Source: Oopsacas minuta
Taxonomy: Eukaryota; Animalia; Porifera
Direction: 5' to 3'
DNA length: 64,000 nt
NCBI GenBank assembly: GCA_024704765.1
Contig: JAKMXF010000111.1
Coordinates: forward strand, 1,256,619-1,320,618
Shown here: piece by piece, positions 1,775 through 27,300 of the stretch
How the letters are laid out: each line of letters begins with the position of its first letter
How positions within the stretch are numbered: the stretch's first letter is position 1
The notes under the pieces: generated by a model
What the model saw: the letters and a program-made list of their open reading frames with translations, nothing else
Database searches by the model: none
Told to the model about the DNA's origin: nothing
Position numbers and translations under genes: made by a program

Positions 1775-3353
1775 TTATGAAGATTGTTTGAGATCTTCAG
1801 GACAATCTGGTTGATTGAAGGGATGTGCTGCTTTGAATGCCTCATTCTTTTCCAGCTCTTCTACTATTCTACATATTGTTGGATAAGGTTCTACCTCTAC
1901 TTTGAACCTAAACGTAGAAATAATTATGGGGTTAATTCATTTGCAGAATTATTAATTGGATATTTCATATTTTGAAAGACAATTTTGACTCGAAATTACT
2001 AGAAATAATCCAAATATTTAATCGGTTTGACAAAAACTACTCAGATAGTTTATGAATTAACTCTCCACATTGATATGAAAAGCAAGAAGTATTGATAACA
2101 AAACGTTACGACCTACCTAGTACTCGGATACAAAGAAAATTGTAGTATGTATATTAAAATTAGTAATATAAGCAAAGTTTGATAATTAAAGTCTACAAAT
2201 ACATCACAATTACAGTACAACCTCGTAAGTACGTACGTCAAGAGATTTCAAAAAGGTACTTATCTGTACTCTGAAGTAAGTACGTCTCGTCCAAAGTATT
2301 TCATTTTGAATTATATTTACCTAATTTCACTATACATTCACAAGTACTAACGAGGTTTACGTACTGTGCTTACCTTGCTGCATTGAAGAACTGAGGTACT
2401 AGACACAGGTCAGCCATGGTTATCTATGTAAAATAGATTAAACAATATATATAATCATTCATACTGTGCAGCGTGCCGAATCTTCTATACTATACTATAC
2501 TATACTACAGTGGTTATACATTTGTTTTTCGTCTTTCATTATTGTTGAAATTTTGTTGAAGCAAGCTGACAAAACAAACATCCTATATGTAACAAATATA
2601 CTACTACACGTGATCACTAAATTTGTTAGATCGCTGTTAGGCCTTCCTAAATATTGATTCGACAGTACATAGGAGCAGTTGCAGGTTTTTCTACGAATGT
2701 TTGGGAGAATTAGGATTGTTCACGGATTAGTAATTATCCCTGTTATCGTATAGTTGATCAGAGCATATTTGATTTGTTGTACTATCCGCTCTTAATGATA
2801 CAACTACAGACAGTACAAATATGCACTGTGATTACTAATATATTCAAAACTCAATTCAACTGACGATTATTATACGTACAGAGATTAAACTTAATTAATG
2901 CAAATAACTAGGGGAATATTATTTAATAATTAACAACTATATGAAGTATGAACTCATATTAGATCATCTAGCAGGACAAACTATTGCTCTGGTGTATGAT
3001 GTTAAATTTTCCGAGGTTAAGCAAATACCTGATACTTTGAAAAGCTTATGATTAATCATAATACTTACTTCGTTTCCAACACAGTATTTGCCAGCAGTTT
3101 CTTTCAATATTGCCTCCAGTGCTAATAAGAAATATTTAAGGTATTAGCAAATTTATGGAAATATAAAACTGTCTTACAAGAATGCACATGGCATTATCAA
3201 GAAATTGAAGAATTCTAGATAATCAATAATTACGTAATTATAAGACTACTCAAAGGTTAATACTTAGTACTTACCATCAAATCCATGTTTAATCCAGTAA
3301 TGTCCCCACTCAGCGCTGCCATCTTTGCCAATCTTATTCAATACACGAAGATT
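1775..3353 (-). other. GSTZ1: GSTZ1 exons 6-9 (3' block)
   Basis: Four short exons 3275..3353, 3069..3121, 2374..2423 and 1775..1907 with canonical splice sites, encoding the GST-zeta C-terminal helical domain. Confidence 0.92.
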
Positions 3354-6300
3354 CTAAATACATAATACACAAGGTCATGTAAAGAATTACTTTCTCATAA
3401 TTACATATGTTCTAGGTAGTTTTGAACATTAGGAATAAATCGCTAATAACGATCTCCAACTTGACAATTGTAATGCTCACCATGTTCATACAATAATTTA
3501 TCTAAGCATAGAATGGATTAGTAGTTTCTTCCAGCTTCCATAAATCGCATGAACTAATAGTTAGTGAAATTAAGTTTAATTGAAATTCAAAAGAGCTACG
3601 AATTACACTGTTTTATACAACCATTATATAATTATTACAAAACAATACAACAATAAATCAATACTTCAATCCAACTTATTCTAACTAATAAAATTACAAA
3701 ACTTTCATAAATGAAGTCATTTCTTGTAGGAGAAATTCCTAATTAACTTCTTCAGTTGGACCTGCATCTAACAAAACGATTCGTCAGAGGTAGCTAACAT
3801 CGATGAGATTTCCTGGAAACTAGGTCTGATCTCTGCATTTATTTGCCAGCACTCTAGCATTACTGAGAATATTCCTTCCGGGCAACCAGTGGGTCGATCC
3901 ATAACATCTGAATTAGCATATGCCTGCAATACATCTTCGTTACTATACCCAGGCCACGGCTTCTCACCTAGAGACCAGATCTCATAAAGCGTCATCCCGA
4001 AAGACCAGACATCCGATTTCTCCGAGTAACGCTGGTAAAAGATAGCTTCAGGTGCTGTCCACTTGAGAGGGATCTTACCTCCCTTTGATGTGTAATAATC
4101 TCCTTCATCTCGGAGCTGTCGAGACAGGCCGAAGTCTGAAATCCGACAAGTGAGGTCTTTAGCTAACAACACATTGCGAGCAGCTAAATCTCGATGAATA
4201 AAGTTTTTGGAAGAGAGATAAGTCATGCCCGAAGCAATCTCTCTTGACAGCTTCAGGTAGAGAGAATACATCTGGGAACGTTGTAGAGTAGATTTGCGGA
4301 GTACCACTACGAATTTTAGAAGTTCTATATGCATTAGCTCAGTAACTATCATGAACGGTTCTGTAAGACTAACAATTCCGAGTAGACGGAGTACATTAGG
4401 GTGTGAGAATTGACCCATAATGGCTGCTTCCTGCAGGAAAGTAAGCTTCAATTCTATGGTGGATGAATCGTGGAGAGTCTTTATAGCCACAAGAAGAGGT
4501 TTGTTTGCCTTAAAGGGGTTGGATTCCATTCCTGATGTGTGCCAGAGACCCTTGTACACAGCCCCAAACTGACCTGATCCTATTTGTTCCTGTCGCTCAA
4601 TAGCACTCACAGCAATTTCGCGATATCTCATATCGGACATTTGATTGAATAGTAGACTCAGGTTCTTAGGAGGTTCCAAGTATATACTCCCCTGCTCGAA
4701 AAATGTATCGGATTTCTGTGATAATTGTCTTGAAGCTGATCCATCTGCACTTTCATACACACTTTCAGACCTCAATTCATATCTTGGCACAACCATTGAA
4801 CTTCCAATATAAGAGCATTGACTCGCTTCTTCATAAGTCTGATACAGGTCATTAACATCATCTGATATACCTAACTCTCCGTATATGTTCTCGTAGGATT
4901 CTGGAGCTGTCTTCATAGCAAATGGCGGTAGTATTTGACCCTGTTCATTAATACTGGAATAAGTAGGATTAGGAAAGTTGAGATTAAAGTCTGTGCTTTC
5001 TACGTGAGGATTTACTTCTGATTTCGGACTCCTATATACCACTTCATTCACGGAACATTCTGATGGAACTAATTGTATATCTTGTGGGTTGACCTCAGCA
5101 TATATTTCATCTTGGGCAGGTCTATTTCCTTTGGATTTATGAGTTCGAGTTAGGAGCAGAAAGAACAGGACAACTACCAGAATTACTATTACAATAATAA
5201 TCACAATCACGACAATAGGAACTGCGTATACTATTGGAAAGGTTATAGCTTCCACAACAGGCCCTGTAGAAACATCAGTAAGAATTGTTTTTGACGTTGA
5301 TTCTAATTGTATGTCCCGACAGGTATTTCCAATGGATCCAGATTTGCATTCACAAATACCATTATTACAAGATTGATTAGGTTTACATTTAGGTTCACAT
5401 TGAAGAAACTGACAATTCGGATAAAGAGGATCACATTCACAAACTCCTTCATTGCATATTTGTGTTTCTCTACATTTAGGAGAACAAGCTTTGGTCTCAC
5501 AACTATCACCGTAATACATGTGAGTGCATTCACAGGTACCATTTGAGAGACAATTACCATCATTCTGACAATCTGGTTGACAAGATAAATTCTGACAACT
5601 ATCACCATAATAAAGACCAGGGCATTCACAGGTACCATTTGATGTACAATTACCATCATTCTGACAATCTGGTTGACAAGATAAATTCTCACAACTATCG
5701 CCATAATAAAGACCAGTGCATTCACAGGTACCATTTGATGTACAATTACCATCATTCTGACAATCTGGTTGACAAGATAAATTCTGACAACTATCACCAT
5801 AATAAAGACCAGTGCATTCACAGGTACCATTTGATGTACAATTACCATCATTCTGACAATCTGGTTGACAAGATAAATTCTGACAACTATCACCATAATA
5901 AAGACCAGGGCATTCACAGGTACCATTTGATGTACAATTACCATCATTCTGACAATCTGGTTGACAAGATAAATTCTGACAACTATCACCATAATAAAGA
6001 CCAGGGCATTCACAGGTACCATTTGAGAGACAATTACCATCATTCTGACAATCTGGTTGACAAGATAAATTCTGACAACTATCACCATAATAAAGACCAG
6101 TGCATTCACAGGTACCATTTGATGTACAATTACCATCATTCTGACAATCTGGTTGACAAGATAAATTCTGACAACTATCACCATAATAAAGACCAGTGCA
6201 TTCACAGGTACCATTTGATGTACAATTACCATCATTCTGACAATCTGGGTGACAAGATAAATTCTCACAACTATCGCCATAATAAAGACCAGGGCATTCA

Positions 6301-9300
6301 CAGGTACCATTTGATGTACAATTACCATCATTCTGACAATCTGGTTGACAAGATAAATTCTGACAACTATCACCATAATAAAGACCAGGGCATTCACAGG
6401 TACCATTTGATGTACAATTACCATCATTCTGACAATCTGGGTGACAAGATAAATTCTCACAACTATCGCCATAATAAAGACCAGTGCATTCACAGGTACC
6501 ATTTGATGTACAATTACCATCATTCTGACAATCTGGTTGACAAGATAAATTCTGACAACTATCACCATAATAAAGACCAGTGCATTCACAGGTACCATTT
6601 GATGTACAATTACCATCATTCTGACAATCTGGTTGGCAAGATAAATTCTGACAACTATCACCATAATAAAGACCAGGGCACTCACAGGTACCATTTGAGA
6701 GACAATTACCACCGTTCTGACATCCTAATGGACATAATATATCTTCACAAGTATCTCCACTGTACCCACTAGGACAGTAACACATACCAGCGTGACAACT
6801 ACCGCCATTCTCACAATTATTAATACACTCACATTTTTTATTGTTGACACAGACGCCGGTAGCTGGACATGGGTTCTCATCATTACAATTTTGACATGTG
6901 ACTTTGAGCAATTCAAAGCAATCATCTACCACTGAAAACGTACATTCGGATAAATGTAATTCTGTCCCAATGCAATCAACCTTGACTCCACTTGTCGCTT
7001 CACCCTGTTCCCAACTTTCTTTAGCACTTGGTCTATCCCTACTTAGACAAAATACTGACGATTCATTCAAACTCCAACCCGAAAAACAAACGTCGGAATA
7101 TGTATCCCCATTCTCACAAATTTGTAGACGCTTGCCAGCTCTCTTGGTTTGTCCATAATTACATGAACTCGAAGTTTGCAATACGACAGTACCAGCAATT
7201 AACAGAAAAGCAAAAACTAACATATTAATATAATAGTATTTGTATATTCTATATGTATTTATATAAATTGGCCCTAGATAGTTGACTGTAATAGAATACT
7301 CTCTCTCATCCAATAATAGTGTTACTAAAAATAATTACTTTAATACTAGATTTGAGCATAATAAATGTCAAATATAATTATATATATATTAGCCTTCGGC
7401 TCGCAAACAAAAATTCACATACGTACATATGAGCAATTTGTGAAATTCAGATTCAGCATACTTGGTATATATATATATATATATATACCCTTGTGTAGTC
7501 ACTGACAGCAAGTTTCTATGTATAATTTAGATTTCGTTAGTTGTTTACATTCATAAAACAACAAATAAATATAATCATCTACAGTAGAACGCGGATAACT
7601 GGATAACTCTCAGTTTATACGTATAGTCGAGGAGAACATAGCCAAAATAATGCGTACTAATACGATTTTTGCTGAAAGTGATAAATAGGAGTATGTCAAT
7701 GCAGAATCCAGCGGGTGACACCTTGGAAGTCTCCTGATTCTGCACTTATACACTTTCAGCAAAAACTACTACTGTAATAATTCTTCTTCCAAACAAAATC
7801 TCAAATCACCGCCTGTGCCCACGTAATTTCCAGCATTTCAAGATTTTTATATTATTTGTTTACTTTATATTCATAAAATCAACAATAAATTTACATATGA
7901 GAAATTTAAGGATGCCAAATTCGGATTCAGCGTACTTAATTAGGGGCCGTTCAATGTTACGCAACTCAAAATTCTCTACATTCTGACCCCTTCCCCTCCC
8001 TATGTCATGCCTTTTGACAGTTTTTGTAATACAAAAAGAATGAGACTGTTACGCCTTGTATACCACCCCCTCTCCTTGGAGCGTTACGTAACGTTTGAAC
8101 GACACCTTACCCTTATACGTCTGTTGAGTCCGTGATAACATGTTGAAACCTAATCTCGAGCATGCTATTGAATTGTATATAGAAATGTATGAAAATATGA
8201 TTAACTACCTAAAAGGTGAAAACTATACACATTAGAATCTCTTCACATGTTAGGTACACATCTAGACGTCACAACGAGTATAAATGCCAAATTTGGTGTC
8301 TTAATCTCTAAAGGTGTGAACAGGAGAGTGAACACACATATACACACCAGTATATACATATATATATATATATGCCAAGTCAAACATTTTAGTACTGAGC
8401 CACTATGTGATATATTATATCTCAGAATTACGAAATTTTGACGAATTATATAACAGCATACTACACTTCCTTGACAACCGAGAAAGAGACAATAATTGAG
8501 ATTTAATGTAATATACGAACCCGGGGTATACAAGATTCATGAACGGACGCTGGTGGTGTTGATTTTAGACGATGAACGTGAATGAACTAAACGTGCGTCA
8601 ATTTGAGACGGATTGAATTGCATTAATTCAGTCTGTTCGTGAACCTTTCATTCCCTGAAAAGTACTAGATTCATAATCCGATATATTAAACTTTGCTAAT
8701 ACGCAAGCTTGATATTAGAGGAATTATTTCCAATACAAAATAGACTACAAAATAGAGTCTCTGAAAACTTGCTATTAGTCGAATATTGGTAATAGACGAA
8801 TTGCTAATAGGCGAACACCACTATTAATAATACATAATATAATATCTAAAACATTGGCTATTAATTCATTTAGAACTTCACCAAAATTGTACCTACTCTG
8901 CAAGTATTAGGCAAATTAGATATTCAATTAAGCATTATACTTGAGAGGGAACAGAATTTGTATTGATTTGTATATAATATTTTTTATATTTTCCAAGCTG
9001 ATCAGTGTAATTAGCGCTAGGTTAATTCCTCAATCTTTATGTTATCAAAGTATCTGACAGCATATGGAGTTATTGATGTAGGTTGGGTATTATGATCTTT
9101 GGTATCATGATGAAATCGTGAACGCATAAAATCCCATGGAATAGCATAAGAATAGACTATTGAGCGAGTTCTTTTTGGCGTTTTTGTTTCTACATCAGAT
9201 GACTCTTTGTTAGGAAAGTTTGAATTACTATATATTCTCTGTACTCTATGCGATTGGTTACACTTCACTTTCTTAATTGCTATACAGAATAAAGTACACA

Positions 9301-12300
9301 AACACACGCACAGTACGCCACAACCACAACCAACCATAAAAGTTGTAGATATTATCACACATAAGATTAACCAATTATCTGGTATTGATGTAATGGAATT
9401 AGGGATCAAACAATCTGAATTAAACAAATTATTACCAAAGCTATCATCAGAAGAATGATCAAAGCATACACAGGTACAATTTGTTAGACAACTACCATTG
9501 TTCTGACATTCTTTAAGACATAAGATTCTCTCACAACTATCACCATAATAAAGACCAGGGCATTCACAGGTACCATTTGAGAGACAATTACCATCATTCT
9601 GACAATCTGGTTGACAAGATAAATTCTGACAACTATCACCATAATAAAGACCAGTGCATTCACAGGTACCATTTGATGTACAATTACCATCATTCTGACA
9701 ATCTGGTTGACAAGATAAATTCTGACAACTATCACCATAATAAAGACCAGGGCACTCACAGGTACCATTTGAGAGACAATTACCACCGTTCTGACATCCT
9801 AATGGACATAATATATCTTCACAAGTATCTCCACTGTACCCACTAGGACAGTAACACATACCAGCGTGACAACTACCGCCATTCTCACAATTATTAATAC
9901 ACTCACATGTTGTATCGTCGACACAGACGCCGGTAGCTGGACATGGGTTCTCATCATCACACATTTGACATGTGACTCTGAGCAATTCGAAGCACTCATC
10001 TACCACTGAATACCTACATTCGGATAAATGTAATTCTGTCCCAATGCAATCAACCTTGACTCCACTTGTCCTTCCACCCTCTTCCCAACTTTCTTCAGCA
10101 CCTGGTCTATCACCACTTAGACAAAATACTGACGATTCATTCAAACTCCAACCCGAAAAACAAACGTCGGAATATGTATCCCCATTCTCACAAATTTGTA
10201 GACGCCCATACCTACTCTTGGTTTCTCCAAAATTACATGAACTCGAAGTTTGCAATACGACAGTACCAGCAATTAACAGAAGAGCAAAAACTAACATATT
10301 AATATAATATAGTTACAATAATTTTCCTTACTCCTTACTTATATATTTTCAGTATTATGATGTAATATTCTTTCAATTCATAGTTCCTAGGCCATACATG
10401 GATGCGTCCCAAAGCACATTTAACCGAGCACATATTAAATACAATATACAAGTAACTCATAATTTGAGAATAACATAAGTAAGCATATGTAAGACGAATT
10501 GAGAATAACATACGAAAACATCTTGTAAGCAAAATGTAATCCACTCTAATAATGCATCCAGTACAAATCTGCAACCAATATACATTTATGGCATAACTAC
10601 CGTGAGATTGCACGGGGAGACACATTTTAATTGTTCATCATTTTAAGGAGCGAATAGTCAGTGCCTACTACACACAGTCAACTCCCGTAATATAGAAACC
10701 CCAAGGGACCGTGATAATTACAGTCAGGGCCGCCTATTATCAACCCACAAGGGACCAAAAATCTTGTTCATAGAATTAATACATATAGAGACTTCATATT
10801 AAGGGAATTTAATTTAATACAAATCCTATGTGAATGATTTCTGGCTTGGTTCATAATAAGAGAATGTTCATAATGAGCACCTTTACTGTACTTCGATATA
10901 AATAGGATTCGATATAGCCGATGAAACTCTTAGGGATTATGTATATATGTATAATTTCTATATATCCGTGTTCGTTAATACGAAAGTTGACTGTGCTATC
11001 ATAAAAGTTAATTAGATACTTAAAGAATCCATAATAACGTAATTCACATAAATATCTTACTTATCAATAATCTTGATTTGTTTGCAAGCTCTTATATAGA
11101 TTAACACTTAGTCTAGGATCGTTCCCAATAATCAAGACAGGATCAGTTTGGGGTACAGGGGGCGGTAACTCTATTTCAATTAGCATACTCAATACTTTAG
11201 AAAAGGTTGGCCTTTCTGATTTTTCACTTCTCCATGTTTCTATCATTGTTTTGTATACATCTCGATTACAGCCTGTAGGTGGAGGTAACTTTGTCCCTAC
11301 TGATAGAGCCCTGACTATTTCCTCATTCGTAGAGTATGGCCATGGTCTCATTCCCAATGACCAGATCTCGTACATTGTCATGCCGAGTGACCACACATCA
11401 CTCTTTTCAGAATACTTTTGATAGAACACAGCTTCTGGAGCGCACCATCTGAACGGGATCTGTCCTCCCTTTGAAGTGTAGTCACCTTCCATACCGAACT
11501 GACGCGTCATTCCAAAGTCTGCAATACGACAAGTTAAGTTTTTAGATACCAAGACATTTCTTGCAGCAAGGTCGCGATGAATAAACTGCATTTCTGCTAG
11601 ATACTTCATACCAGCTGTGATATTGAGACAGAACTGTAGTAAGAGTGAAGGTAACAGCTGACATTTATCAAGTTGGGATTCTTTCAGCTTAAGCAAAAGT
11701 TCCCTCAGCTCAGATTTGAGTAGCTCTGTAATCATCATGTAAGGAGAACTACTAACTACACCAATTAACCTCAATACATTAGGATGTTTGAATTGGTTTA
11801 ATATCATTGCTTCCTTTATAAACGCATTTTCTGCTTCATTATTTGTATAATCTTTTAATTTCTTAACAGCTACGTCAATAGTACCATCAGGTGAACTATA
11901 TTGTGCACTGTAAACGATTCCAAACTGCCCTTGTGCTATTAACTGTCCAATTTTTAATTTGTCTTTATTTACTTCGATATTAGGATCATGACGTAGAGAT
12001 TTGATATACCGTGGAGGCTCAACGTATATCTTCCCAGAAGATGTGAGATGGTGATTCTTACTCACTCCTCGCTTAGAAATAGACGCATAATATTCTGTAT
12101 CAACATAACCGTCAAGGATGGAGGTATAAAAGTCTTCTTCCTTATGACAATCAAGTAGATTCGATTTACTTTTGGTAGTTGTAGGAGATTTTGGTTGGAT
12201 TGGTGATTCATATTTCCTTGAAGAATTTGCGTATGCTGTTAATGATGAATTAGAGGGTGGGACAGGAGGTATGGCCATCTGTGGTATAGGGTCAATAGAG

Positions 12301-15300
12301 TCAAAACTCCCACCAGCGGATTCAATTCTAGGTCTTCTCTCATAGCTTAGATTTTCGCTGGGATATGAATCGAAGCTGTCATCATCCATGAGCGGAAAAG
12401 TTCTATCCGTGTGGTCATTATTCGCTAAGGTGCCATAACGATTACTTGAATGAGAAACACTTCGAATATCACCATGATGTGTATTTTTAAATCTCATACA
12501 TTTGATTAAGACGAGTATTATACTGAATAGAGCGATCACGATAAGGATAACTGATAGGACAGATCCCACTACTATGCCTATTTCGTTATTATTCTGTTGA
12601 GATGTACCATCTACATCTAATTCACATTTAGGTTCTAGACTATTGTGGCATAAATGACAATAATCAGATTCATTAACGTAATTACATGTAGATGTGAAGT
12701 TGCAATATGAAATATATTTATTTCCATCACAATTCGTTAAAACCGGTTTCAGATTATTATTTGAGCTCTCATAACTCTCAACTGATCCAATATGAACCAT
12801 CCCTAGACAGAATTCATTGGTAGAGATATCGCCCAATCCTTCATCATTGAAACATAAAAACTTCCATTCGAGGGTCCTATTATTACTATTCAAACATATT
12901 TGAATAACATTAGATAAGTTTCCTATACTAGTTACTCTTTTGTCTCCGTCTCTACTACAACTTTGAGCGAATGTGTATGATAGATAAAACGTTAATACAG
13001 AAAGAGACAGCAAATAAACAAGTAAAATATTGGAATACATAAAAGCGAGAATCCAATTTCTTCCAGTACGATATTATTGATAAAGCAATATTATCCATGA
13101 TTATGAGAATATCTACCAGAAGAGTGATATATGATATGTACTTCTGAATAGATGTACCTATGACTATCAATTGATGCCTCCAAATGCAGTATAAATGAAA
13201 AAGAATACTTTGGGGCCTCTCTACGTGAGGCGTATTTCGATCATTTTTACTCAAAATATTTCAGTAATAACAAATTCCATAAGCTGGATCCTGACATTAA
13301 ATTGAATAATAAAATTGGACTCGTAACAGAGCAAAATGGATAAATAATAGATTAATAGAATAAAGAATAAATGTGAATCATTTTCAGATGCTGTGAATTT
13401 ATGTTCTATCAAAATTGATTGAGCATTTTATAAATTCAATATTCGGTATCAGGCTTATTCATTAGAAGATTAAAAAGTTAGTAATCAAGAATCCAAAGAA
13501 CACTTGGATATTTGCCTAAAAGTTGGTCTCATTTTTGGATCTTGCCTCCATGTCTCTAACATGATTTGGTACATTTTTTCTGGACAACGGACAGGTTGTG
13601 AGAGGGTGTCTCCGTTTGTAAGAGCTTGTATAACTTCCTCATTATTACAACCTTCCCATGGCTTATCTCCCAGTGACCAGATCTCGTACAGTGTCATACC
13701 AAATGACCACACATCAGATTTCTCAGAGAATTTATTGTAGAACAGAGCTTCTGGAGCTGTCCAACGGAGAGGTACCCTTCCACCACCTGAAGAGGTGTAG
13801 TAATCATTGTCACAATCTATTCCTCGTGACATACCGAAATCTGCCACACGTACACTCAAATCTTTCGCTACTAACACATTCCTAGCAGCTAAATCTCTAT
13901 GAATGAATTTCTTATCAGCTAGATGCTCCATTCCAGCTGCTATCTCCTGACTGAACTTCAGCAGTAGATTTTGAATATTTAGTTTGTCTGAAGAAGCAGT
14001 AGGTCTAATTTGGAGTAAGAGTTGTCTCAGTTCTGTCTTGAGGAGTTCTGTTACCATCATCCATGGTTCTTGAGTTGTCAGTATACCGATAAGTCTGAGT
14101 ACGTAGGGATGATGGAACTGAGTGAGAATAGCAGCCTCCCTCATGAAATCCATTTTGGTATCTTTGTTAGTACCCACAGTTTCCTTCAACGTTTTGATAG
14201 CTACAGGAATGTCTCCCTTCCCTGTACTGTATTTACCTCTGTACACAACACCGAACTGACCAGAAGCGAACTTTTCTCCTATCTCTATATCTTCTGCTCT
14301 AATCTCATGGATATATGCATCTACCATGTGTTTCAATTCAGGGAAGTTCTTAGGAGGCTCCAAATAAGGGCTATCAACTATAGTGCTCTTGTATAAAGAG
14401 TTAACTGATACACCAAAATGAATAGAGTCTATCAGCTGATTTGGATCAATCTTCTGACTTAGTAGGTTAGCATACATACTTGGTTCTATGACCTCCCCAC
14501 CCACTATACTCATATAGTGTTCTATGTTATTATATTCTAGCAGAAAATGAGTTGGATCTTGATATGGCGATGGATCTTGTGAAATGGTGTGATATATATT
14601 TGATGAGTTTCGAAGTGAATTGATAGGAGAATCACAATATATTTCAACCACTTCAGAATAAATTACTTCTTCTCCAGCAACATTGTCACAAGTTGTAACT
14701 GTAGGGTTATTGGTATTTAAATCTCTCCCTTCAAGATTATCAAGAATTAAAGTACGTGGCTCTTGCAAAAGCTTATCTGTGGATTTCTTCCTGCAAGTAA
14801 GACAAATAACTAATATGATGAGGACAGACAAAATAATGGATATACTGATAGCAATAACAAGACTGATGACCAAACCTATGATACTAATGTTATTATCGAC
14901 AGCTGACTCAGAGCAATTTCCTTGATTTAACCCAGATGAAGTACAGTCGATAGTTGGCAAAATAGTTTCTGTCGTAGACAAAATAGATTCTGTCGTAAGC
15001 ATAATAGTTTCTGTCGTAGGCATAGTAGTTTCTGTCGTAGACAAAATAGTTTTTGTCGTAGGCAAAATAGTTTCTATCGTAGGCATAGTGGTTTCTGTCG
15101 TAGGCATAGTGGTTTCTGTCGTAGGCATAGTAGTTTCTGTCGTAGGCATAGTAGTTTCTGTCGTAGGCATAGTAGTTTCTGTCGTAGACAAAATAGTTTC
15201 TGTCGTAGGCATAGTAGACTCAACATTAGTTTGGTTAGAAGTTGGTATTTGTGTAGATATGGTCGTACTAATTGTTGTTAATGGTTGAGTTAATTGTTGG

Positions 15301-18300
15301 GTGTCGTGAGAAGTAGTACCTACAGTAATATCATGAATACTACAATCAACTCCACTAATTCCAGTAGGACAGATACACTCGCCTAGAAAACAGAACCCTC
15401 CATTCATACAAGCCTCCTCACACACACATCTTCCTTCCTCACAAATTCCAGCATTACAATCGGTTTCTGCGTTACTGCATCGTCTGCAACTAAATTCAAC
15501 AGCAGACACATAATGACAATCCTCCATTGTTGTACTATGACTACAATCCAATAGAGACATACTGTCACTACTGCAGTCTAGATTTATTAATTTAACCATA
15601 CCATCGCTTATAATATTAGAGGCACCTAACCCTGAGTAATCTGACAAGATGTAACCAGCTCTTCTACAATACACATATGCCTCACTACTACTCCAACCTT
15701 CAAAACACACAAAGGTCCAACTTTTAACTCCATTATTCTCAAAACAAATCTGTATTACATCGTTTCTATTTGCAGCAGATACCACCCTCTCATCTCCCTC
15801 TACGTCACAAGAATCGGAGAATACAACTCCTGAGGTTAGAAGCAGAAGCTGGACTACTCGTAAAATCCTCTGGTAAAAGTACATAGAATATTAATATGTT
15901 AAATAAATTTGTAGTCCTAATATATTAGGTAATTCAATCAGGCTAGCGCTAGGCAATGAGATAAACCATGGCCTGGGTATACCATTTCAAGGCTAGGTAT
16001 AATGATGTACTATTAATACAAGAATTGAGAATCCGTTTGGGAGAGTTCTACCGAATTATACAGAAATTAATTAAACAGACAGATTTCTAATACATTTTAG
16101 TATTTAAATGTTTTATCAGTAAAGCCTTGATTTCCCGAACAGCAGGGAACGTACGGGAATTTGGCGAAATAGAATCTGAGATTTGAGCTTCTGACTTCTA
16201 TACTAACTATAGTACTAATCCTTTCGAAAGTTATGGTGATGTTAGACACATATTAGTATAAATAAATCTTCCAAGTTGCAACATTCTTGTCAAATATTCC
16301 AACTTCCGAGTTACAAAATCCTCATTTTCTATAATCCTCAAGCATTGAATGTCAAATATCAAAATACAGTAAGACACTATTCAGTTATTCGAATACGTTA
16401 ACACCAAAGTTGAAATTTAGAGACGAAAGGTGTTCGGATAGCCGAGGGTGTACCGTATCCAGCAACCTAATTGGTTACGACATTTATGGAGTTGTTGGTT
16501 AGAAAAATTAATCATTAATACAACTGAAAATTTGATTGCATAATTGTCCGTGTTGATTCTACCATATTAAATAGCATTCCATGAAAATATCTCTAAAATG
16601 CAAACGGCTAAGTATATTAATTACAGAAATTTCACTGAATAATATTACGTATAAGTAACAATTCTAAGAATATAATTAATATAATGCTACATACGCGGAA
16701 TTTATAATTTCGTATTCGTTTGTTGGGTCATGGATTCATTATTAGATTTGACTGAAGGGAAATATACAACAACGGAATCAGAAAACGTGTACTCTAATCA
16801 TTTCTTAAACAAAATAATTATTAGATTATATATGTTTCCGTAAGTTTTTTCTTTAGTTTTCTTGTAATAATTGCGTAGAACATTGCTGGGTTATATGTAA
16901 GACTGTTGTTCAAAATATGATAAATAGAACAAATTTCTGTTTTTGTTATGATAATTATCTGAACACAGTTAAGAACATAGTTATAACAAATGAAACTTGC
17001 ACTAGTTGTATCTCTCTTAATTATATTTGCATTATGGCAGTGCAGAAGTCAAGAGTGTAGCATGGTGAATGAAATAGAAGATTTACAATGTAATGAATTG
17101 AGAGAAGTTAGGTCAGATGCTATATCATCATCATCGAATTGTCGGTCATTCATTACATATCGAAATAGTAGTGAGAATTGTCAAGATATCCCACACGAAG
17201 ACGAAGATTATCTAGATGGGATAATAGTAATCAAATGCACTCGTAATGATGGTATAATCTGTTTGAAAAGTGAAATGAAATTTAGGTGTACATCGTGTGA
17301 AGATGACGCGAATGGTCGAGGTTTTTGTAATTGTAATTGTATGGCTGAGTGTGAGGTAAGTGATGAAAAAGAGACATGGGACATAATATCTACAGTAAAT
17401 ATAACCCAACAAGTTATCTCAAGAATAAGCACTAATCAACCAACAAGCCCAACTATAAATGAAATAACAGATGCACCAACAGCGAATAATACCACAATAA
17501 GGAACAACAGTAGCCCAACTCCTGATCTCCCATTAAATACAAAGCAATACTTAGCTTACGTATTACCAATAGGTGGAATATTTATCATATTACTGATAGC
17601 AGTGCTAATCCCTATCATTGTGTGTTTGATATGTAGAAGGGTATTAAGTAAAGGTAAAGATCCAGAATTAGATACACACTCGATGGATATAAGCCAGTTA
17701 TACATAAATCCTCATATCAGCTCTACGAATGAATCTAACTATTCCACGATATCAGAAATAGAACCCAATAATACCTGTAATTCTCTCAGAAACCACTCCA
17801 ACCAAGATACAAGTAATGGTATAACATCGAATAGACTATCTGAAAATATGTATCAAGAGATCAGATCTAGCCTCATATCAGAAGCAACAACTCCCGGGGA
17901 AATGATACAAAATGTATTATACAATTTCGGTGCTACCAATGAGACAGATATCTCAAATAACTTTTATCATGTCTTGGTAGCTGGTGAAGTAATTCAACCA
18001 AACATTTATGATCAAATAATAGAGGTTAATTCTTTATACTCGAAAGATAATACAAGCAATGAGCAGCGAGATTTTCATAACTACATCGAGCCCCCTAAGA
18101 ACTTCCCTGAATTGAAACACATGGTAGATGCATATATCCATGAGATTAAGGCAGAGGATATAGAGATAGGAGAAGAGTTCGCTTCTGGTCAGTTCGGTGT
18201 TGTGTACAGAGGTAAATACAGTACAGGGAAGGGAGACATTCCTGTAGCTATCAAAACGTTGAAGGAAACTGTGGGTACTAACAAAGATACCAAAATGGAT

Positions 18301-21300
18301 TTCATGAGGGAGGCTGCTATTCTCACTCAGTTCCATCATCCCTACGTACTCAGACTTATCGGTATACTGACAACTCAAGAACCATGGATGATGGTAACAG
18401 AACTCCTCAAGACAGAACTGAGACAACTCTTACTCCAAATTAGACCTACTGCTTCTTCAGACAAACTAAATATTCAAAATCTACTGCTGAAGTTCAGTCA
18501 GGAGATAGCAGCTGGAATGGAGCATCTAGCTGATAAGAAATTCATTCATAGAGATTTAGCTGCTAGGAATGTGTTAGTAGCGAAAGATTTGAGTGTACGT
18601 GTGGCAGATTTCGGTATGTCACGAGGAATAGATTGTGACAATGATTACTACACCTCTTCAGGTGGTGGAAGGGTACCTCTCCGTTGGACAGCTCCAGAAG
18701 CTCTGTTCTACAATAAATTCTCTGAGAAATCTGATGTGTGGTCATTTGGTATGACACTGTACGAGATCTGGTCACTGGGAGATAAGCCATGGGAAGGTTG
18801 TAATAATGAGGAAGTTATACAAGCTCTTACAAACGGAGACACCCTCTCACAACCTGTCCAATGTCCTGATCAAATATATCAAATTATGCTTGAGACCTGG
18901 AAGCAAGATAAAGATTATCGCCCAAGTTTCTCCCAACTGAACAGAGAGCTGAATTTACCTATATGATTTCAGTCATCAAGCTACTTCTCAATATTATTAA
19001 ACACTTGATTGTGTAAATCAAGATTTCTGGAATAACATTTGTTATGATATTCAAGTTGATTGTAAATTATGTCAATACTCAAAACTTAATCTTGCAGCCT
19101 TTGTACTCAATTTCAAGTAATAACACCTTGAAACACATTCGCTCTCTCATTTTTAACGCCCTAGGTTTGAATTTTTGAAAAATGGCTATAAACTTATAAT
19201 TCATTTAAACCATGGATGCCTAGTTAAGCTATATGTATATCTAACATGGTTAATATACAATATTTTGTAAACTAATAATATCATAATTATATTATTAGGA
19301 ATTTAGGACCTTGGTCATTAGTTGCATGGGAAACGGACGCTAGAGTTAGGTAAACCTCATGCTATACACATTCCATTCCATCGATGAATTTATTTTCCTA
19401 TACAGCCAGGGGCGTAGGGCCCCAAACAAATGTAAGGGTTCACAACTTCAGACCAGACGAGTTTTTAATTAAATTCCTCTGACTTTACTAATTATCACTA
19501 AGAAATAAGAATATATACTAAAGTTTCCAAAATATCCAAAGTAGTCAGAGAATATATTGATGACCCTTAATTTAGGGTAGGGACAGATATTTCACTTAAA
19601 CATGCGTTTTGGGGTGATTTTATTTTATATTGAGAGTGAGATCGCGAGTGAAGAGAGCCGAAATTTTACCGTTTGAAATTCGATCCAAATATTATGTATT
19701 TAGATTCCAATTTTGATATTTTCAAATCTATATCTCATATATTTACCATATTTACAACCAGGGTAGGATATATGTCCGAGATGCCTGAGCTGCACTCCCA
19801 GTCTGCCAGCTGGATATTTTCTATCTGTCTTTGTAGCAATTATTATTATTATTATTATTATTTGCAGAATGTACAAAATAGAAATGATAATTATAATATC
19901 GCAGATAATCAGTATTTTGTAATTTGTACACATAAACATGAATAATAAAGATACCATCTTCATTTGATTATAAGTTCTTAGATAAGCTTACGTGCTACAA
20001 CATTTTAAGAAAGATTTTTTGTCTACAAAGTATTTTTTGCGATAATTAGCCAGTAAACTAAGTTATCAAAATGATGATATGCAATACTATAATTTACTTA
20101 AAATTGTGTCGGAATTTCATCTCGTATATTCATCGAATTTTCATTAGTTTGAAAACTTTGAAAATATTAAAATATATAATCGCAGCGTAAAATTTGCAAT
20201 TATATTAGTTGATGCAATTCCATAGAGTATTGCACAACAGCGTATGTTCTTTCTAATTGTAATCAAATGTATTTTCAACATGTAACTTGAGTAATAATTA
20301 TTACTATCTGTCAGACAGTGAGGAGACTGTTTGGCACCAGGGGTTACGTCTCTGGAGAGAGACAATTAGATTCAATTTCACTGAGGCAACATCATGAATC
20401 ATGTCGATGAGTATTCGATTGCCACTGAAATCGAATATTTATTAAAATATGTCTAGGATTATTGGAAAATTATAATATTCTAACAAAAATCTGTAAATAT
20501 TTACGTCTAGAACAAATAGTTAATTCCTTTAAATAAATTATTTCTGATAAATATGGTCTCATAATCATAGTAACTTAAGTATGCGAAACCAAAGTAGAAA
20601 GTTTCAAGAAATAGACTATCAGATTAAGATTATATAAGGGAATATTCATGCATTTCGAAGTGACAATGTGTCCCATCTTTTTCGACACATTATACAATAC
20701 TTGATTAATTCACTAATTCATGAAATTTTCTTGTAAATCATAATTCAGATGAACATTTCTTGGTAAAAATTTGATTACAATATTAACAGTATGAAGTTCT
20801 ACAATATTTCTGAGAAAATATGCCAAGAGTTTATTAAATGATTAGATAATACACATATGTGTATATATATATAATAATAAGCTTTCTCAGAAAACAGTAA
20901 GTCTGGTTATAGTTGTTGATCTATAAAGCCATTTCAACTTAGTCAAGCTCTGTAATACCACAAATTATGCTAAATATTCGCATAATAATTATTAGACTGA
21001 ATGGAATCATGGCCACATAATAATCTGTGTGGTATAACAACATAGTGGGAAGATCAACGAATTCTAATTTCATAGAGATGAAATTCAATGAGTGTACAAA
21101 TAATTGTGTTTTTATCAAGAATTGTGTCTCTGAGTCTGCCCTATAAATGCAGTAGGATTGTCAATAATATGATTTTTCAAACAATTAAACAGCACATACA
21201 TTGAGATGCATATACTCAATATTCTAAGTGTAATCCTATTAGGGATAACCTTTTTGGGATTGGGACGATGCGAATTATGTGACAAAGTTGGAGAGATCAG

Positions 21301-24300
21301 GTCAGAAAATCTTGAAATTATGGATTCATTATCCCAAAGTTACGCACAGATATGTCTACAGCAATCGAGTAGTTTGGAATGGAGTCACATTTGTTCTGAA
21401 CAAACAAGTGAAGGATTTGCTTGGCCCTCTGACAACGGATATGTTTGGTGTAGATCTATGAAGAGAATACCACAGAGTGATCACATAGGATCAATAACGG
21501 CCTCTACATATGGTGTGGGTGATATTAAGTTAGCCAGTGCAAGCTGTGACAGGATAGATCATGAAGATTTGTATGCTTGTAATCACACTACAACTACTGA
21601 GGGTTGTAGATATCTGCATGGGCTTGTTTGTGTCTCTTGTTCAGAGGCTGTACCCTGTAATGGTAATGGATCATGCAGCGAGGGAATGTGTGAATGTAAT
21701 AATAACTGTATGAATGGTGGATTCTGTGATTTAGGAATATGCCAGTGCAGATATCCATACTACGGTGAAAATTGTGAGTACAAATATTGTGTTTCATCTT
21801 GTAATGATAATGAGTTCTGCTTGAATAGCTCTGGGACGTGTATTTGTAAGGATTCATATTATGGTGACAGTTGTCAGTATAAAATATGCCCCGATACATG
21901 TGGTGAAAAAGGAGAATGCAATAATCAAACCGGTTTGTGTCAATGTGAACCAAATTATTTCGGTATCACATGTCAATCAAAGAATTGTACACCTTCTTGT
22001 TCACAGAACGGAACATGTGATGAAACAGTGGGATTATGTCAATGTAATGCACCGTATTACGGAAACAGTTGCCAGTACTTAGGAATAAATTGCACTAACA
22101 AATGTCTAAACCGAGGAATTTGTAATTTCACAAATGCTATGTGTGAATGTAGTGCAAACTTCAGAGGAAACAGCTGTGAAATTGCGTTATCACGTTTTGA
22201 AGAGAATATAGTGATTTCCATAGGAATATTAGCATGTACAGTAGTAATACTGATTGGCTTGGTAGTACTAGTAGTCATAATGTGTATAGTGATTAAAAGG
22301 AGAAAGAGAGGTTCTAAACAAAATGGGAAAATTAAAAATATCGAGTTGTCTGAAGATCAGATACAGGCTTCACAAGAAAACATAACCGAGTCTAAAACTA
22401 ATATAAAGCCAAAACGCAAGTTAAAGGATAACAAAACCTACATCAAGAGCTTAAACTCTAGTAAAGGAACTGAAGCACAGATGATAAGTCTCAATCAGAA
22501 CGGGAATAATTTTCATGCTTCTACAACGAGTAGTCCGTATACACAACTAGGAACACTTGAATATATCAGTTATGAAAGGGAGGAAGTGCATGCCATGTTT
22601 TTAAATGGAGATCGGACAGGGGAAGAGTTGTACGAGGCATACACTAGGATTAACGATAGCATTTTGCCAAGTAGAAACGCTACAATTGTCCTGTCTCAGG
22701 AAGAACGTGATTCGATTCATTCTCAAAATAACGAGCCAATCTATGAAACCTGTCTCAGGAGGGGGAAAGATACAAATGTTGTAAAATTCTCTGATTCAAC
22801 TGAATACTGCGAACCTCCGGATAACTTACCAAAGATATTCGATAGAATGTCTTTAATGAAATTTCGTGAAATCAACCCTGATACTCTTGAGAAACTAGAC
22901 TACCTGGGTTCTGGAGAATTCGGTATAGTTTATAAAGGCATTTGGGATACAGGACGAGAGAAAATCGATGTTGCAATGAAAATATTGAAATCATCAGATG
23001 AAGGAGTGAAGACAGCGTTCATGAGGGAGGCAGCTATAATGGGACAATTCTCCCATCCAAACATCCTAAAACTTATGGGCGTACTTAGTTTGTCAGAACC
23101 CTTCATGATAGTTACAGAATACATGAATGGAGATCTACCAAAGTTACTAATAAATCTAAAACCATCTGGAATAAATTTTTCCCTGATACCGCCAGTCCTA
23201 TTAAAGTTCTGTAATGAGATTGTTACGGGCATGGAGTACCTTGCTTCTAAGAATTGTGTACATCGAGATCTAGCTGCTAGAAATGTTCTCCTCAGTCGTA
23301 ACATGGTGTGTAAAATCGCAGATTTTGGAATGTCACGTGAATTCAAAGAGAACTACGATTATTATAAATGTTCTGGAGGTCTTATTCCTGTGAAGTGGAC
23401 CGCCCCAGAATCAATATTCTACCAGAGATACTCTGAGAAGAGCGATGTTTGGGCTTTTGGCATGACTATGTTTGAGATATGGTCACTAGGTTATAAGCCT
23501 TGGCATAATAAGTCTAATGAAGATATTCTTCAAAAGATGCAGTCTCGTCAAGTAATGCATCCACCAACAGGTTGCCCAAAGGAAATATATGCTATCATGC
23601 TGGAGACCTGGAAGTACGAAGTGGATGAGAGAATTACATTCAAACTATTGCGGCAGTTACTTCGGAAACCAATCCAATTCCAAACTAATACTTCATCTCA
23701 CCCAGCTGATGTTCTTGGAAACGATCCTTCTCTCGTACGAGGATTCGATTGAAGCATAATATTGATAATATTTTTATAATTTGTTTTCTTATCATTTAGA
23801 ATGTTTTACTTCTTTATGTATATGTCAGCTGTTTTGGTATTTTTACACACATTAGCAAGGATCTTATCATAGAATTCTGAATAATTATTCATTTTGAAAC
23901 ACCCGCTTTGCCACTTTTACGACCCAAACGTGGGGCTTCCAGGCGGTCCAAAGAGCCAGAGAAAATTTTACGACGCCCATGTATTGGTGTGTAAATTAAA
24001 AGATTCTAAATAGCCTCAGAAACTTGGTTTCAACCAAATATTAAAAGTACTCAGAGCATGCTCCATCTGCACTGAGAATATGCACCACCTTGGCAATTGA
24101 ATAAAGCTATTAAATATTTGGCTTGGATGTTTTCTAGGCATTTTTGGACAATTCTCACTTGTTGGAATAGTATTTTCCCTGTGTTATTGGCTACCTGCTT
24201 AGATGTTTATTTTTGGACATTATGAGACACTCCTCGTTTTGTTGGAGTGGGTATTTCCCTTGTATTAGTGGTCAGGTGCTTGGATGTTGTTTAGGGCATT

Positions 24301-27300
24301 TGGGGCGGGTGATACTCTAAGTACAAATAGAGCATGCTATGAGTACTTTTACCACCTCTTTCAACGGTTATACTGGGGTGTTCGAGTACGCTGATTCCGA
24401 ATTTTGCACTTTGAAACAGGGGTAGCGCCAGGAAATCCCCGACAAGGGGGCTTAGATCCCCAATGGGGGGGTCTAAATTTGTGACATAAATCCTAGAATA
24501 CTACACAGTTTTACTAGATATAATTCATATTCTTGTCAAATTTCTTCCAATTCCTTCCCAACGGGGGAGCTGTAGCCCCCTCACCTCCCCCTAGCGCCAC
24601 CCCTGCTTTGAAATTACTCATATGTAAATAATTGTTGTGTCTATAAACTAATTTCGAGGTACGAAGTGCCGAGTTCCATGGATCACAGAGTATTCGCAAG
24701 CCGCGCGCTCGTATATTTTATGGTCAGAAATCAAATTCATTGCACCTGTTGTATTGCAAATGCTAGAAACCGAATTTAGAGTAAAAATACTACCAAATAG
24801 ATCCCGGAATTTAATTTTAACCAAATAATATTAATCTAAAGCTAAATATTAAGATAATATCTCTAATATGAAAGCATATACTTTACCATAATTATTAAGA
24901 TACCTAGAGGTGTGCGGAAATTAAATACAATTAAATTCTAAGCAATTAAGCTGAATTCAATTATCTAAGTTCTAACAATCTTGACACTATATGCCAACGT
25001 AGTATTAATTTAATAAAATACAATTTCATTCTCATGGCAATCAATCATATGGTAATTATGTGATTAATCAGCCACAATTTGTAATTAGTTATAGCGTGGT
25101 GGTGTAATTAATTGGAGTTGAGAAAAGCATTAATAGTCTAAGATAAAAAGTAAAAATGATTGGAAAATTGAAAACTTGAAGTACGCTTGATAATGTCAAA
25201 GATAAAGTCAATCATATTTGTGTTACTGATCTGTCTCATGACTCAGGTTATTACTGTATTAACTTGTACAAATAGCAGCCAGTGTAATGGATCAGCTGTG
25301 TGTGGAAGCGGTGGAGTGTGTGTTTGTGAATTTCCTAATTTCGGTGCAGATTGTGAGTTGAGGAACTGCTCCCCTCCCTGTAATATTAACCAGACTTGTA
25401 ATAATCAAACTGGAATATGTCAGTGTAAAGTTCCATTCTATGGAAATAACTGCGAATTGAGAGGATCAGTTTGTCCAGCTCAATGCTTGAATGGAGGTTC
25501 ATGTAACTTTGCTGATGGTACTTGTCTATGTGCTAATAGTTACCATGGAGATGTATGTGAGTTACGAGTATGTATTCCAGCCTGTAAGAATGGAGGTGTG
25601 TGCATATCCCCTAATCACTGTAAATGTGTTAACGGTACGTATGGAGTGTTATGTGAAGAGTTTTTAGACGATTTAAATATAACAGATTTTCCATTAATTT
25701 TTGGTGTTTCAATTGGATTGATAGTATTTTGCTGGTGCTGGGTTATTTACGTAATCATAATATTAACCACTGAGGCCTTCTGTATCTGTAGAAGAAGGAT
25801 AAACAAGAAATCAACTCCACAACCACATCTTTCCCTAAGAACGCAATCTTCCATTAGAATACCGATGCATTTACCAACAGTTAATTTAGAAGCAGGAACA
25901 TTCGATATACAAAACTTAGGAATGACAGATATAGAAAGGAGGAGGAGTCATCTGGTTAGAAATCAATACTACAACAGCAATGAGAGTATAGAATACAGAG
26001 GATGTAATACCGAGACAGTAGCGTACATAGATCCAGATTTACTTTCTGTATCTCCAAACAGAAACTACAACGTCCCAAATAATGACCAACTAGCTGCATC
26101 AGAAGGGCATTGTATTACAAACCATCATATCAGAGAAGCTAGCTTGAATGCAGGATTATATCATGATAACAGTGACGTATATATTCTCCCAGATAATAAG
26201 AATACTGGACCTGCTCTACCACCGAAGCCAAGACCAAAAGCTAAATTTGAAGAGACTCGAAAGAGATTAAGAAAACAAAGATCAAATAGCTATGCAAACG
26301 ATGATTATATCATTTATGAAACTATTGGAGAAGAAGATAGAACGATGGATACAATGTATTCACTGCTAAGCAAGCCAAACAAAAGCGAGCGTAGATGCGT
26401 TGTACTCTCAAATGAAGAAAGAAATTCTCTTCCCAGAGGGAAAACTAGTTATAGCACATTCCCTGGCTTGCTAAAGCAGAGAAGGCAGACTAGATACTTC
26501 AAAGAAGCTCCAATCTATGACAAACCTTCCACAACTCTGGATAAACTGTTTGATCAGATGTCAGGCATGAATTTCAGGGAAATAGTGCCAGACACATTGA
26601 TCACGAGTGAGCTATTGGGGACAGGAGAGTTTGGGATAGTTTGTAAGGGTGCGTGGATTTCTAGACTGGGAGAGGTACCTGTAGCTGTGAAAACTCTGAG
26701 AGAGCCTAGTACTGAAGAAAGGAAGATCGCTCTGTTCCAAGAGGCACTTATCATGGGACAGTTCTCCCATCCAAATGTAATCAGGATTCTAGGTATAGTT
26801 AGCATTAGGGAGCCTTACGCAATCGTATCAGAATTGATGAAGACTGAAATGCTAGTATTTCTACGTACAGTGAGAAATTCAAAGATTGATTTGAACAAAC
26901 TGCCTCCTCTCTTGCTTAGGTTTTGTCGTGAAATAGCAGCAGGAATGCAATACCTCGCTTCAAAGCGTTTCGTGCATCGTGATCTAGCAGCGAGAAATAT
27001 TTTAATCGCGAACAACTACACTATTCGCATAGCAGACTTTGGGATGGCTCGTGAAATTATAAATAACAGCGAATACTACTCTACTTCAGGGGGTAACATA
27101 CCGGTTAGATGGACAGCACCTGAAGCTTTGTTCAATCAACTGTATTCTGAAAAATCTGACGTGTGGTCATTCGGTATGACAATGTTTGAGATATGGTCTC
27201 TAGGTCTCAATCCATGGTACAATTTATCTAATGACGAGGTTATACGAGCTATCCATGGACACCGAGTTCACCCTCCACCCACAGGTTGTCCTAGAGACGT

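Follow-up and report, generated by a model that had tools for sequence, protein, structure and literature searches.

How do two neighbouring receptor genes, with no detectable homology in the parts that would face the outside of the cell, come to carry one and the same kinase sequence? The question is raised by a stretch of 64,000 nucleotides of the glass sponge Oopsacas minuta (GenBank assembly GCA_024704765.1, contig JAKMXF010000111.1, positions 1,256,619 to 1,320,618 of the forward strand), hereafter the window, in which two predicted receptor tyrosine kinase (RTK) genes, R4 and R5, stand head to head within an array of related genes. An earlier note on this DNA had remarked that both kinase domains hold the same sequence in inverted orientation, and had put forward two ideas: ongoing gene conversion that keeps one signalling output on two different sensors, and a shufflon-like arrangement that could be flipped by recombination. 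Comparison of the locus with its counterparts in other glass sponges points to recurrent, domain-limited interlocus gene conversion of the R4/R5 kinase as the best explanation, to which we give a probability of about 0.9.

An inverted tract within the kinase domain

A repeat search returned a single inverted pair, formed by two arms of 822 nt that are 98% complementary and lie 3727 nt apart (coordinates of this and all other features of the locus are collected in Table 1). Compared base by base, the arms show 17 mismatches and no gaps, and their longest exact run spans 684 nt. The earlier note had described this exact core with the very coordinates that we recover, and its further observations also hold, since the near identity that it saw over some 88 bp upstream corresponds to a 5′ shoulder with 5 mismatches in 88 nt (5.7%), and the inner segment that it put at 3.9 kb measures 3903 nt between the two exact cores. 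The 43 nt on the 3′ side of the core contain 12 mismatches, and outside the arms, in both directions, ungapped identity falls to around 30%, which is the level expected by chance. The 5′ edge of the tract lies at the motif Y-[IL]-E-P-P in every species compared. The next-best DNA match to the kinase arms across the 61-Mb genome is only about 70% identical, so that 684 identical bases are not a product of chance. At the protein level, a BLASTP comparison finds R4 and R5 identical through the kinase, homologous but rich in indels across the juxtamembrane region, and without homology in the ectodomains.

Concerted evolution of the pair in glass sponges

A word search with the kinase-plus-tail part of R5 retrieved proteins 72-79% identical from ENA assemblies, several of them per contig, and ectodomain-only word searches with R4 and R5 gave one foreign match only, on the contig of ERZ26869290 described below. 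The orthologues were reached by the former search and then placed by their genomic context. The proteins found come as pairs with an R4-like or an R5-like N-terminus, a kinase that is identical within the pair, and two recurring kinds of C-terminal tail. The resulting comparison set holds seven loci from five ENA assemblies, named here A (locus L017, ERZ25766962), B (L018, ERZ25071281), C1 and C2 (L019 and L020, ERZ25072730), D (L021, ERZ25069837) and E1 and E2 (L022 and L023, ERZ25072740), which together with O. minuta make eight haplotypes from six assemblies. In all eight the order of the array, R3(-) R4(-) / R5(+) R6(+), is the same as in the window, with small additions. Inverted R4/R5 kinase arms are present at each of the seven other loci (831-866 nt, 95.3-99.5% identity, spacers of 2.9-3.7 kb), where the longest exact runs reach 163-476 nt in adjacent R4-R5 pairs and 667 nt between R5 and the distal R4 copy (R4b) of A.

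A codon alignment of 33 genes, partitioned into N-terminal part, shoulder, core and tail, separates the history of the kinase from that of its surroundings. Within a haplotype, R4 and R5 are only 35-40% identical in their N-terminal parts, where orthologues from different assemblies average 59% (R4) and 56% (R5). The relation is reversed in the shoulder (91-100% within a haplotype, against orthologue means of 73% for R4 and 72% for R5) and in the core (95.7-99.7% against a mean of 81%), and in the tail the values are 58-66% within a haplotype and 64% (R4) or 71% (R5) between orthologues. For O. minuta itself, R4 and R5 share 99.6% of their core nucleotides, against 95% for the shoulder, 58% for the tail and about 40% for the N-terminal part, and the synonymous divergence (dS) rises from about 0.003 in the core to 0.22 in the shoulder and 1.4 in the tail, and is saturated in the N-terminal part and juxtamembrane region.

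The trees agree with these figures. In the DNA tree of the core, R4 and R5 pair by assembly (support 100/100), and the kinases of the flanking genes R3 and R6 form normal orthologue clades with the same species branching; forcing R4 to be monophyletic in the core costs 1426 log-likelihood units (approximately unbiased test, p=4.9e-59). The protein tree of the N-terminal part instead shows an R4 clade and an R5 clade (each 100/99), again with the same species branching, and the tree of the tail, which covers 60-75 nt past a conserved TW, is also split by gene (100/98), a tree with the two O. minuta tails forced together being rejected (p=0.002). The flanking parts are thus orthologous across species and saturated at synonymous sites, which makes R4 and R5 old paralogues whose duplication predates the split of the six glass-sponge assemblies. 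Orthologous cores, on the other hand, differ by 4-24% of their nucleotides (dS 0.08-1.4, with a ratio of nonsynonymous to synonymous divergence, dN/dS, of 0.08-0.33), so that nucleotide-level constraint does not account for the identity of the cores within a species. The kinase is under ordinary purifying selection, and the identity between the paralogues extends to synonymous sites, which sets aside convergence or constraint at the level of the protein. The pattern of concerted evolution, its age and its limits can all be read directly from these alignments and trees, and the core is homogenised in each of the six assemblies, so that the idea of ongoing conversion maintaining one kinase on two sensors is strongly supported as a description.

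Some contigs bear on how recent the exchange has been. C1 and C2 are collinear and 97.8-99.2% identical over about 20 kb, and E1 and E2 are 98.5-98.9% identical. C1 and C2 differ at three sites of the CTTC type in such a way that R4 of C1 equals R5 of C2 and R5 of C1 equals R4 of C2, and the R4 arm of C2 shows 3 differences from the R5 arm of C1 and 12 from its own allele. Two sites in E1/E2 are specific to the haplotype yet common to both genes of each haplotype, and in assembly A the three arms form a mosaic. Shared polymorphism between the copies, which the earlier note had proposed to look for, is therefore found in C1/C2 and E1/E2 provided that these contig pairs are haplotigs, and in that case variants common to both paralogues would indicate conversion on a population time scale.

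The window keeps traces of more than one event. In O. minuta a shoulder with 5.7% of mismatches adjoins a core with 0%, which suggests an older, longer tract beneath a younger, shorter one. Moreover, a 2,018-nt copy of window positions 11676-13692 occurs 190 kb downstream on the same contig (1461908-1463923) with 97.6% identity. It comprises part of R3, the R3-R4 spacer, the tail of R4 and, from the R4 core, 104 nt, breaking off sharply within the kinase; this dead fragment is useful as a time marker. The copy differs from the window by 2.1% outside the core and by 6.7% (7 of 104 positions) in the part of the core that it contains. Since this excess of divergence starts at the edge of the core (13587/13589), the copy suggests that the R4 core may have been overwritten from R5 after the fragment arose.

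Several assemblies add their own variations to the array. A carries two tandem R4 copies (L017 3815-5896 and 7382-9463), 93.3% identical over 2.1 kb, and the distal copy, at 6.5 kb from R5, is closer to R5 (97.8%, with the 667-nt exact run) than the adjacent one is (95.3%). An extra gene, R6a, is present in B (L018 13766-15952) and D (L021 4409-6622), where an R6-like EGF ectodomain is joined to a kinase and tail of the R5 type; the R6a kinase has joined the conversion group of R4 and R5. Within L018, positions 13702-14803 match 17852-18956 at 93.8%, and 11048-12105 match 14915-15980 at 93.4%. Between two RTK genes of the same locus, the 712 nt at 3693-4403 match their own reverse complement at 95%, as a palindrome with a perfect centre. 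A contig of 3.6 kb from a sixth sponge sample (ERZ26869290, ctg160959, 316-2235 and 2009-3444) combines an SRCR and EGF ectodomain of the R4 type with a stalk, transmembrane and juxtamembrane region of the R5 type. It may represent either a genuine exchange of ectodomains or a chimeric assembly, and it was not used as evidence because the contig is a fold-back (arms at about 972-2009 and 2401-3430) that breaks at a Ser-rich, poly-T-rich insert of the kinase.

Conversion and its alternatives

R4 and R5 already stood head to head as separate genes before the lineage of O. minuta parted from those of at least five other glass sponges. Since then, in our account, ectopic, non-crossover conversion has acted repeatedly on their kinase-coding segments, in a tract of about 0.8 kb that opens at the Y-[IL]-E-P-P motif just ahead of the Gly-loop and closes near the C-lobe end. 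When one arm suffers a break or gap, its inverted partner, at a distance of 3-4 kb on the same or the sister chromatid, may act as the repair template, and the simplest route that we infer is synthesis-dependent strand annealing, whereby a few hundred bases would be overwritten and the flanks not exchanged. Each event would restore the high identity needed by the next one, so that the tract could perpetuate itself. The ectodomain, transmembrane segment, juxtamembrane region and C-terminal tail, having presumably diverged beyond the homology needed, follow the course of ordinary orthologues. The most recent event in O. minuta probably covered the whole of the exact core, with R4 as its putative recipient, and an older, longer one appears to have reached position 14360. 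The outcome is one kinase sequence under two different ectodomains, or three in two of the species.

A number of points weigh against this account or narrow it. Conversion is deduced throughout from patterns and not from directly observed events, and the status of C1/C2 and E1/E2 as allelic haplotigs is an assumption. The G+C content at third codon positions (GC3) of the converted core, relative to the unconverted R3 and R6 kinases, is higher in C and E, equal in O. minuta and A, and lower in B and D, and there is no consistent signal of GC-biased conversion in it. That R4 was the recipient is weakly supported, with an a priori P of about 0.008; a cluster of mismatches just as dense occurs elsewhere in the 2,018-nt copy, so that the direction from R5 to R4 is suggestive only. 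De Bruijn collapse and Pilon polishing could have contributed to the run without any mismatch, and the 684 exact positions should be read as an identity of at least about 99%, with at most a handful of true differences erased. Finally, the sameness of the kinases may be a neutral by-product of proximity and homology rather than an adaptation.

The same geometry also admits a different reading, in which crossovers within the arms flip the 3.9-kb segment and swap the tails and 3′ untranslated regions of the two genes. Such flipping might be a programmed switch akin to a shufflon, or else an inversion that recurs as a polymorphism. The shufflon-like proposal of the earlier note is correct as far as geometry goes, since arms of such length and identity permit the inversion and both genes stay in frame, and conversion between inverted repeats is known to be resolved sometimes as a crossover, which yields an inversion. 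However, a second orientation was looked for across the eight haplotypes and only one was found: the SRCR ectodomain with an R4-type tail ([YRNH]-x-[DEG]-[PA]-[KP]-[MKL]-R...F..[IL]) always adjoins R3, and the R5 ectodomain with an R5-type tail (x-[QRC]-[DE]-K-D-x-R-P-x-F..L..[EQ]-L, the first residue being K, N or Q) always adjoins R6, in 8 of 8 cases. Orientation also agrees between C1 and C2 and between E1 and E2, the type of tail has co-segregated with the ectodomain since before the species split, and what would be swapped comes to only 20-33 residues. In addition, the open reading frames (ORFs) of at least 80 amino acids between 9 and 24 kb of the window are RTKs or their antisense shadows, and no recombinase gene is evident among them, though no systematic recombinase search was part of this survey. 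No crossover product is fixed or caught as a polymorphism in these consensus assemblies, in which rare somatic or low-frequency germline inversions are invisible. The explanation lies either in the rarity of crossovers or in selection against swapped tails, and the conservation of gene-specific tails is compatible with the latter; a switch or inversion polymorphism is, in our judgement, very improbable. Measured against the conditions that the earlier note had set for its own refutation, the outcome is divided, with a single orientation on the one hand and shared polymorphism on the other.

We consider it just as improbable that the identity of the O. minuta arms is an artefact, produced when repeats collapsed or when short reads that map to several places were used for polishing. 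The assembly history invites the suspicion, as this genome was obtained with a SPAdes hybrid procedure (k up to 99; Illumina plus corrected PacBio reads) followed by SSPACE, Pilon and GapFiller (PMC10280926), and its 684-nt run exceeds those of all other adjacent R4-R5 pairs, with only the distal pair of A coming near. Polishing, however, cannot raise the roughly 60-75% identity of the directly adjoining tail to 100% with a clean in-frame edge, nor produce a tract the size of a domain between flanks of 58% identity, and each arm lies in a unique context of its own, 3.7 kb from the other. The same arms occur at 95-99.5% identity in five other, independent assemblies, for which reason the feature is not an artefact of the O. 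minuta assembly; the contig names of these five, as we read them, resemble those given by the long-read metagenome assembler metaMDBG. A one-time event restricted to O. minuta, a recent replacement or duplication such as a young inverted duplicate with fast-diverging outer parts or a one-off domain swap, would be enough for the 684-nt identity if O. minuta were considered alone. It is scarcely credible once the other sponges are taken into account: flanks that are saturated at synonymous sites and orthologous to separate genes elsewhere make the duplicates old, and the same tract has been homogenised independently in every lineage. Furthermore, the 5.7% shoulder and the 6.7% divergence of the 2,018-nt copy point to at least two nested events, and the variants common to haplotigs indicate events on a population time scale.

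Selection could favour the sameness of the kinases if R4 and R5 (plus R6a in two species), co-expressed from a shared divergent promoter region of 0.5-1.1 kb, formed a heteromeric or interchangeable set that needs one identical kinase and activation loop, for instance for trans-phosphorylation. Conversion would then keep the module matched as ectodomains and tails diversify, possibly for self/non-self or microbe sensing, and rare somatic inversions might occur. We regard this scenario as speculative and rather unlikely.

The two receptors and their array

R4 and R5 are intact, divergent ORFs whose 5′ ends face each other 1105 nt apart. From their translations, both are receptor tyrosine kinases, with a full catalytic domain, an extracellular part and a single transmembrane helix. 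R4 is laid out as signal peptide, SRCR domain (27.9 bits against a cut-off of 26.1), EGF-like Cys module, Thr-rich stalk, transmembrane segment, juxtamembrane region and tyrosine kinase, and R5 as a short Cys-containing ectodomain, which has no match in Pfam, followed by transmembrane segment, juxtamembrane region and tyrosine kinase. The hydrophobic N-terminus and the one long hydrophobic stretch followed by basic residues were read by eye in both proteins. The domain PK_Tyr_Ser-Thr (PF07714) is complete in both (279.5 and 278.4 bits, profile positions 1-256/258, E about 1e-83, 3.1e-83 for R4), and the catalytic motifs VAIK, HRDLAARN, DFG and PLRWTAPE are legible. The Gly-loop, in the region of window positions 14264-14281, has the sequence A-S-G-Q/H-F-G, in which Ala stands in place of the first Gly; this holds for R4 and R5 in every species examined, and the other catalytic motifs are all intact.

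An exact protein look-up finds R4 on record once, from its own contig. R5 is annotated publicly as a protein of 634 amino acids that starts 24 residues past the first ATG of the ORF (16990-17061), hence the lack of an exact record for the 658-residue ORF. The longer ORF opens with a hydrophobic, signal-peptide-like stretch, MKLALVVSLLIIFALWQC, as the orthologues do, and the annotated start is therefore probably too late. The gene-specific portion of the tails amounts to 20-33 residues that close the kinase C-lobe, and no docking array is obvious in it. The spacer between the two genes is unalignable between O. minuta and the other assemblies except for one match of 24 nt (16912-16935, 87.5% identical to B and D, where it lies about as far upstream of the start of R5, and marginal with E=0.006), so that co-regulation of R4 and R5 cannot be inferred from it. 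A repeat of PTTETTM units accounts for most of the extra 90 or so residues of the O. minuta R4 (799 amino acids against 693-714 in its orthologues), and this stalk is a species-specific, mucin-like expansion.

Table 1. Positions in the window of the converted tract, the genes that carry it and their neighbours.
Feature	Positions	Strand	Basis or remark
R3, flanking RTK; kinase unconverted, ordinary orthologue across species, used as control	11064..13040	-	ORF, Pfam, core tree
R4, intronless receptor tyrosine kinase, 799 aa	13485..15884	-	ORF; Pfam; NCBI nr entry of 799 aa
R4-type C-terminal tail (C-lobe end plus about 20 residues)	13485..13588	-	Tail tree, R4 clade 100/98; unconverted in O. minuta
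Left arm (R4 kinase domain, aa ~509-782)	13539..14360	-	Repeat search and base comparison
Exact 684-nt core in R4 (Gly-loop to LSQPV), reverse complement of the core in R5	13589..14272	-	Base comparison
5′ shoulder of the tract (partner 18088-18175)	14273..14360	-	5 mismatches in 88 nt, dS 0.22
21-nt tandem repeat, Thr-rich PTTETTM stalk of R4	14905..15261	-	Some 17 units over 357 nt; found by the repeat search as 12 registers, 21 nt apart, of a 126-nt reference
Spacer between start codons, 1105 nt, A+T-rich (30% G+C)	15885..16989	.	Presumed to hold both promoters
R5, intronless receptor tyrosine kinase, 658-aa ORF	16990..18966	+	ORF; Pfam
Right arm (R5 kinase domain)	18088..18909	+	Repeat search and base comparison
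Exact 684-nt core in R5	18176..18859	+	Base comparison
R5-type C-terminal tail (KQ[DE]KD.RPSF.QL..EL)	18860..18966	+	Orthologous to R5 tails of other sponges
R6, flanking EGF-rich RTK; kinase unconverted in O. minuta, second control	21206..23752	+	ORF, Pfam, core tree

The G+C content of the window is 30-39%, and the value published for the O. minuta genome, of about 61 Mb, is 36% (PMC10280926). Other homogenised tracts of the array are direct repeats, namely an exact one of 382 nt in an EGF cassette of R7 and R13 (25279-25660 and 39597-39978) and one of 92.9% identity between the front ends of R1 and R2 (6367-7235 and 9441-10309). Two exon matches to the maiA/GST-zeta-like profile lie on the minus strand about 43 kb apart, at 44698-44835 (profile positions 63-108) and 1802-1936 (166-210). 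They are consistent with the GSTZ1 gene spanning the array that the earlier note regarded as its host, with the reservation that the exon for profile positions 109-165 was not located in the profile search.

A known process in an unusual setting

Interlocus gene conversion between linked duplicates, inverted ones included, is a textbook process, with the divergent hsp70 and Amy pairs of Drosophila, the palindrome arms of the human Y chromosome and RHD/RHCE as classic inverted cases. The sponge locus resembles such examples of concerted evolution in having close paralogues, here inverted, a sharp-edged tract in part of the coding sequence, flanks that are not exchanged, and paralogues of one species more alike than orthologues. 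It differs from them in that the tract corresponds to one domain, the tyrosine kinase, of receptors with unalignable sensors, and in that it is maintained across glass-sponge lineages whose orthologous cores have themselves diverged widely (dS 0.5-1.4). Among vertebrates, the paired receptors of the KIR, Siglec and LILR families share the ligand-binding ectodomain and differ in the signalling part. Those are likewise neighbouring mosaic receptor genes with one module homogenised by conversion and another one different, whereas R4 and R5 offer the mirror image, since it is the signalling kinase that is shared and the ectodomains that differ.

Bacterial shufflons and invertible switches also have inverted repeats that flank a segment whose inversion would recombine gene ends. 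In contrast to them, the arms of R4 and R5 are whole coding domains, one orientation is seen in the eight haplotypes, and neither short specific sites nor, among the ORFs of the region, a site-specific recombinase is evident, a statement that comes without a systematic recombinase search; on present evidence the locus neither works like such switches nor belongs with them. Conversion is also documented in the tandem CRK/DUF26 receptor-like kinases of plants, where it acts between nearby recent duplicates, is said to keep the copies similar and fades with divergence (Commun Biol 2019, PMC6368629). Both are receptor kinases in local arrays with conversion, but the R4/R5 pair is old, inverted and very different outside the kinase, which alone is kept alike.

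Our literature search turned up no paper that connects sponge RTKs with gene conversion, and neither subject, tyrosine kinases or conversion, comes up in the genome paper of O. minuta (PMC10280926). The locus is a clean new example of a known process, not a new mechanism and not a DNA switch, and as a case of long-lived, domain-limited concerted evolution in an early-branching animal it is of moderate interest. The eight syntenic haplotypes constitute ready data for conversion tract length and for the ratio of crossover to conversion in such an animal.

Sponges possess very large lineage-specific RTK families, the diversity of which is usually credited to duplication and domain shuffling. Domain-limited conversion is a third force besides these two: at this locus a signalling module has been kept identical within species for longer than the time of synonymous saturation, with sensors and tails evolving as orthologues. 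Kinase-domain trees of sponge RTKs can consequently group by species and mimic a recent lineage-specific expansion of genes that are in fact old, and pairs like R4 and R5 serve as natural experiments that bear on which receptor parts have to match.

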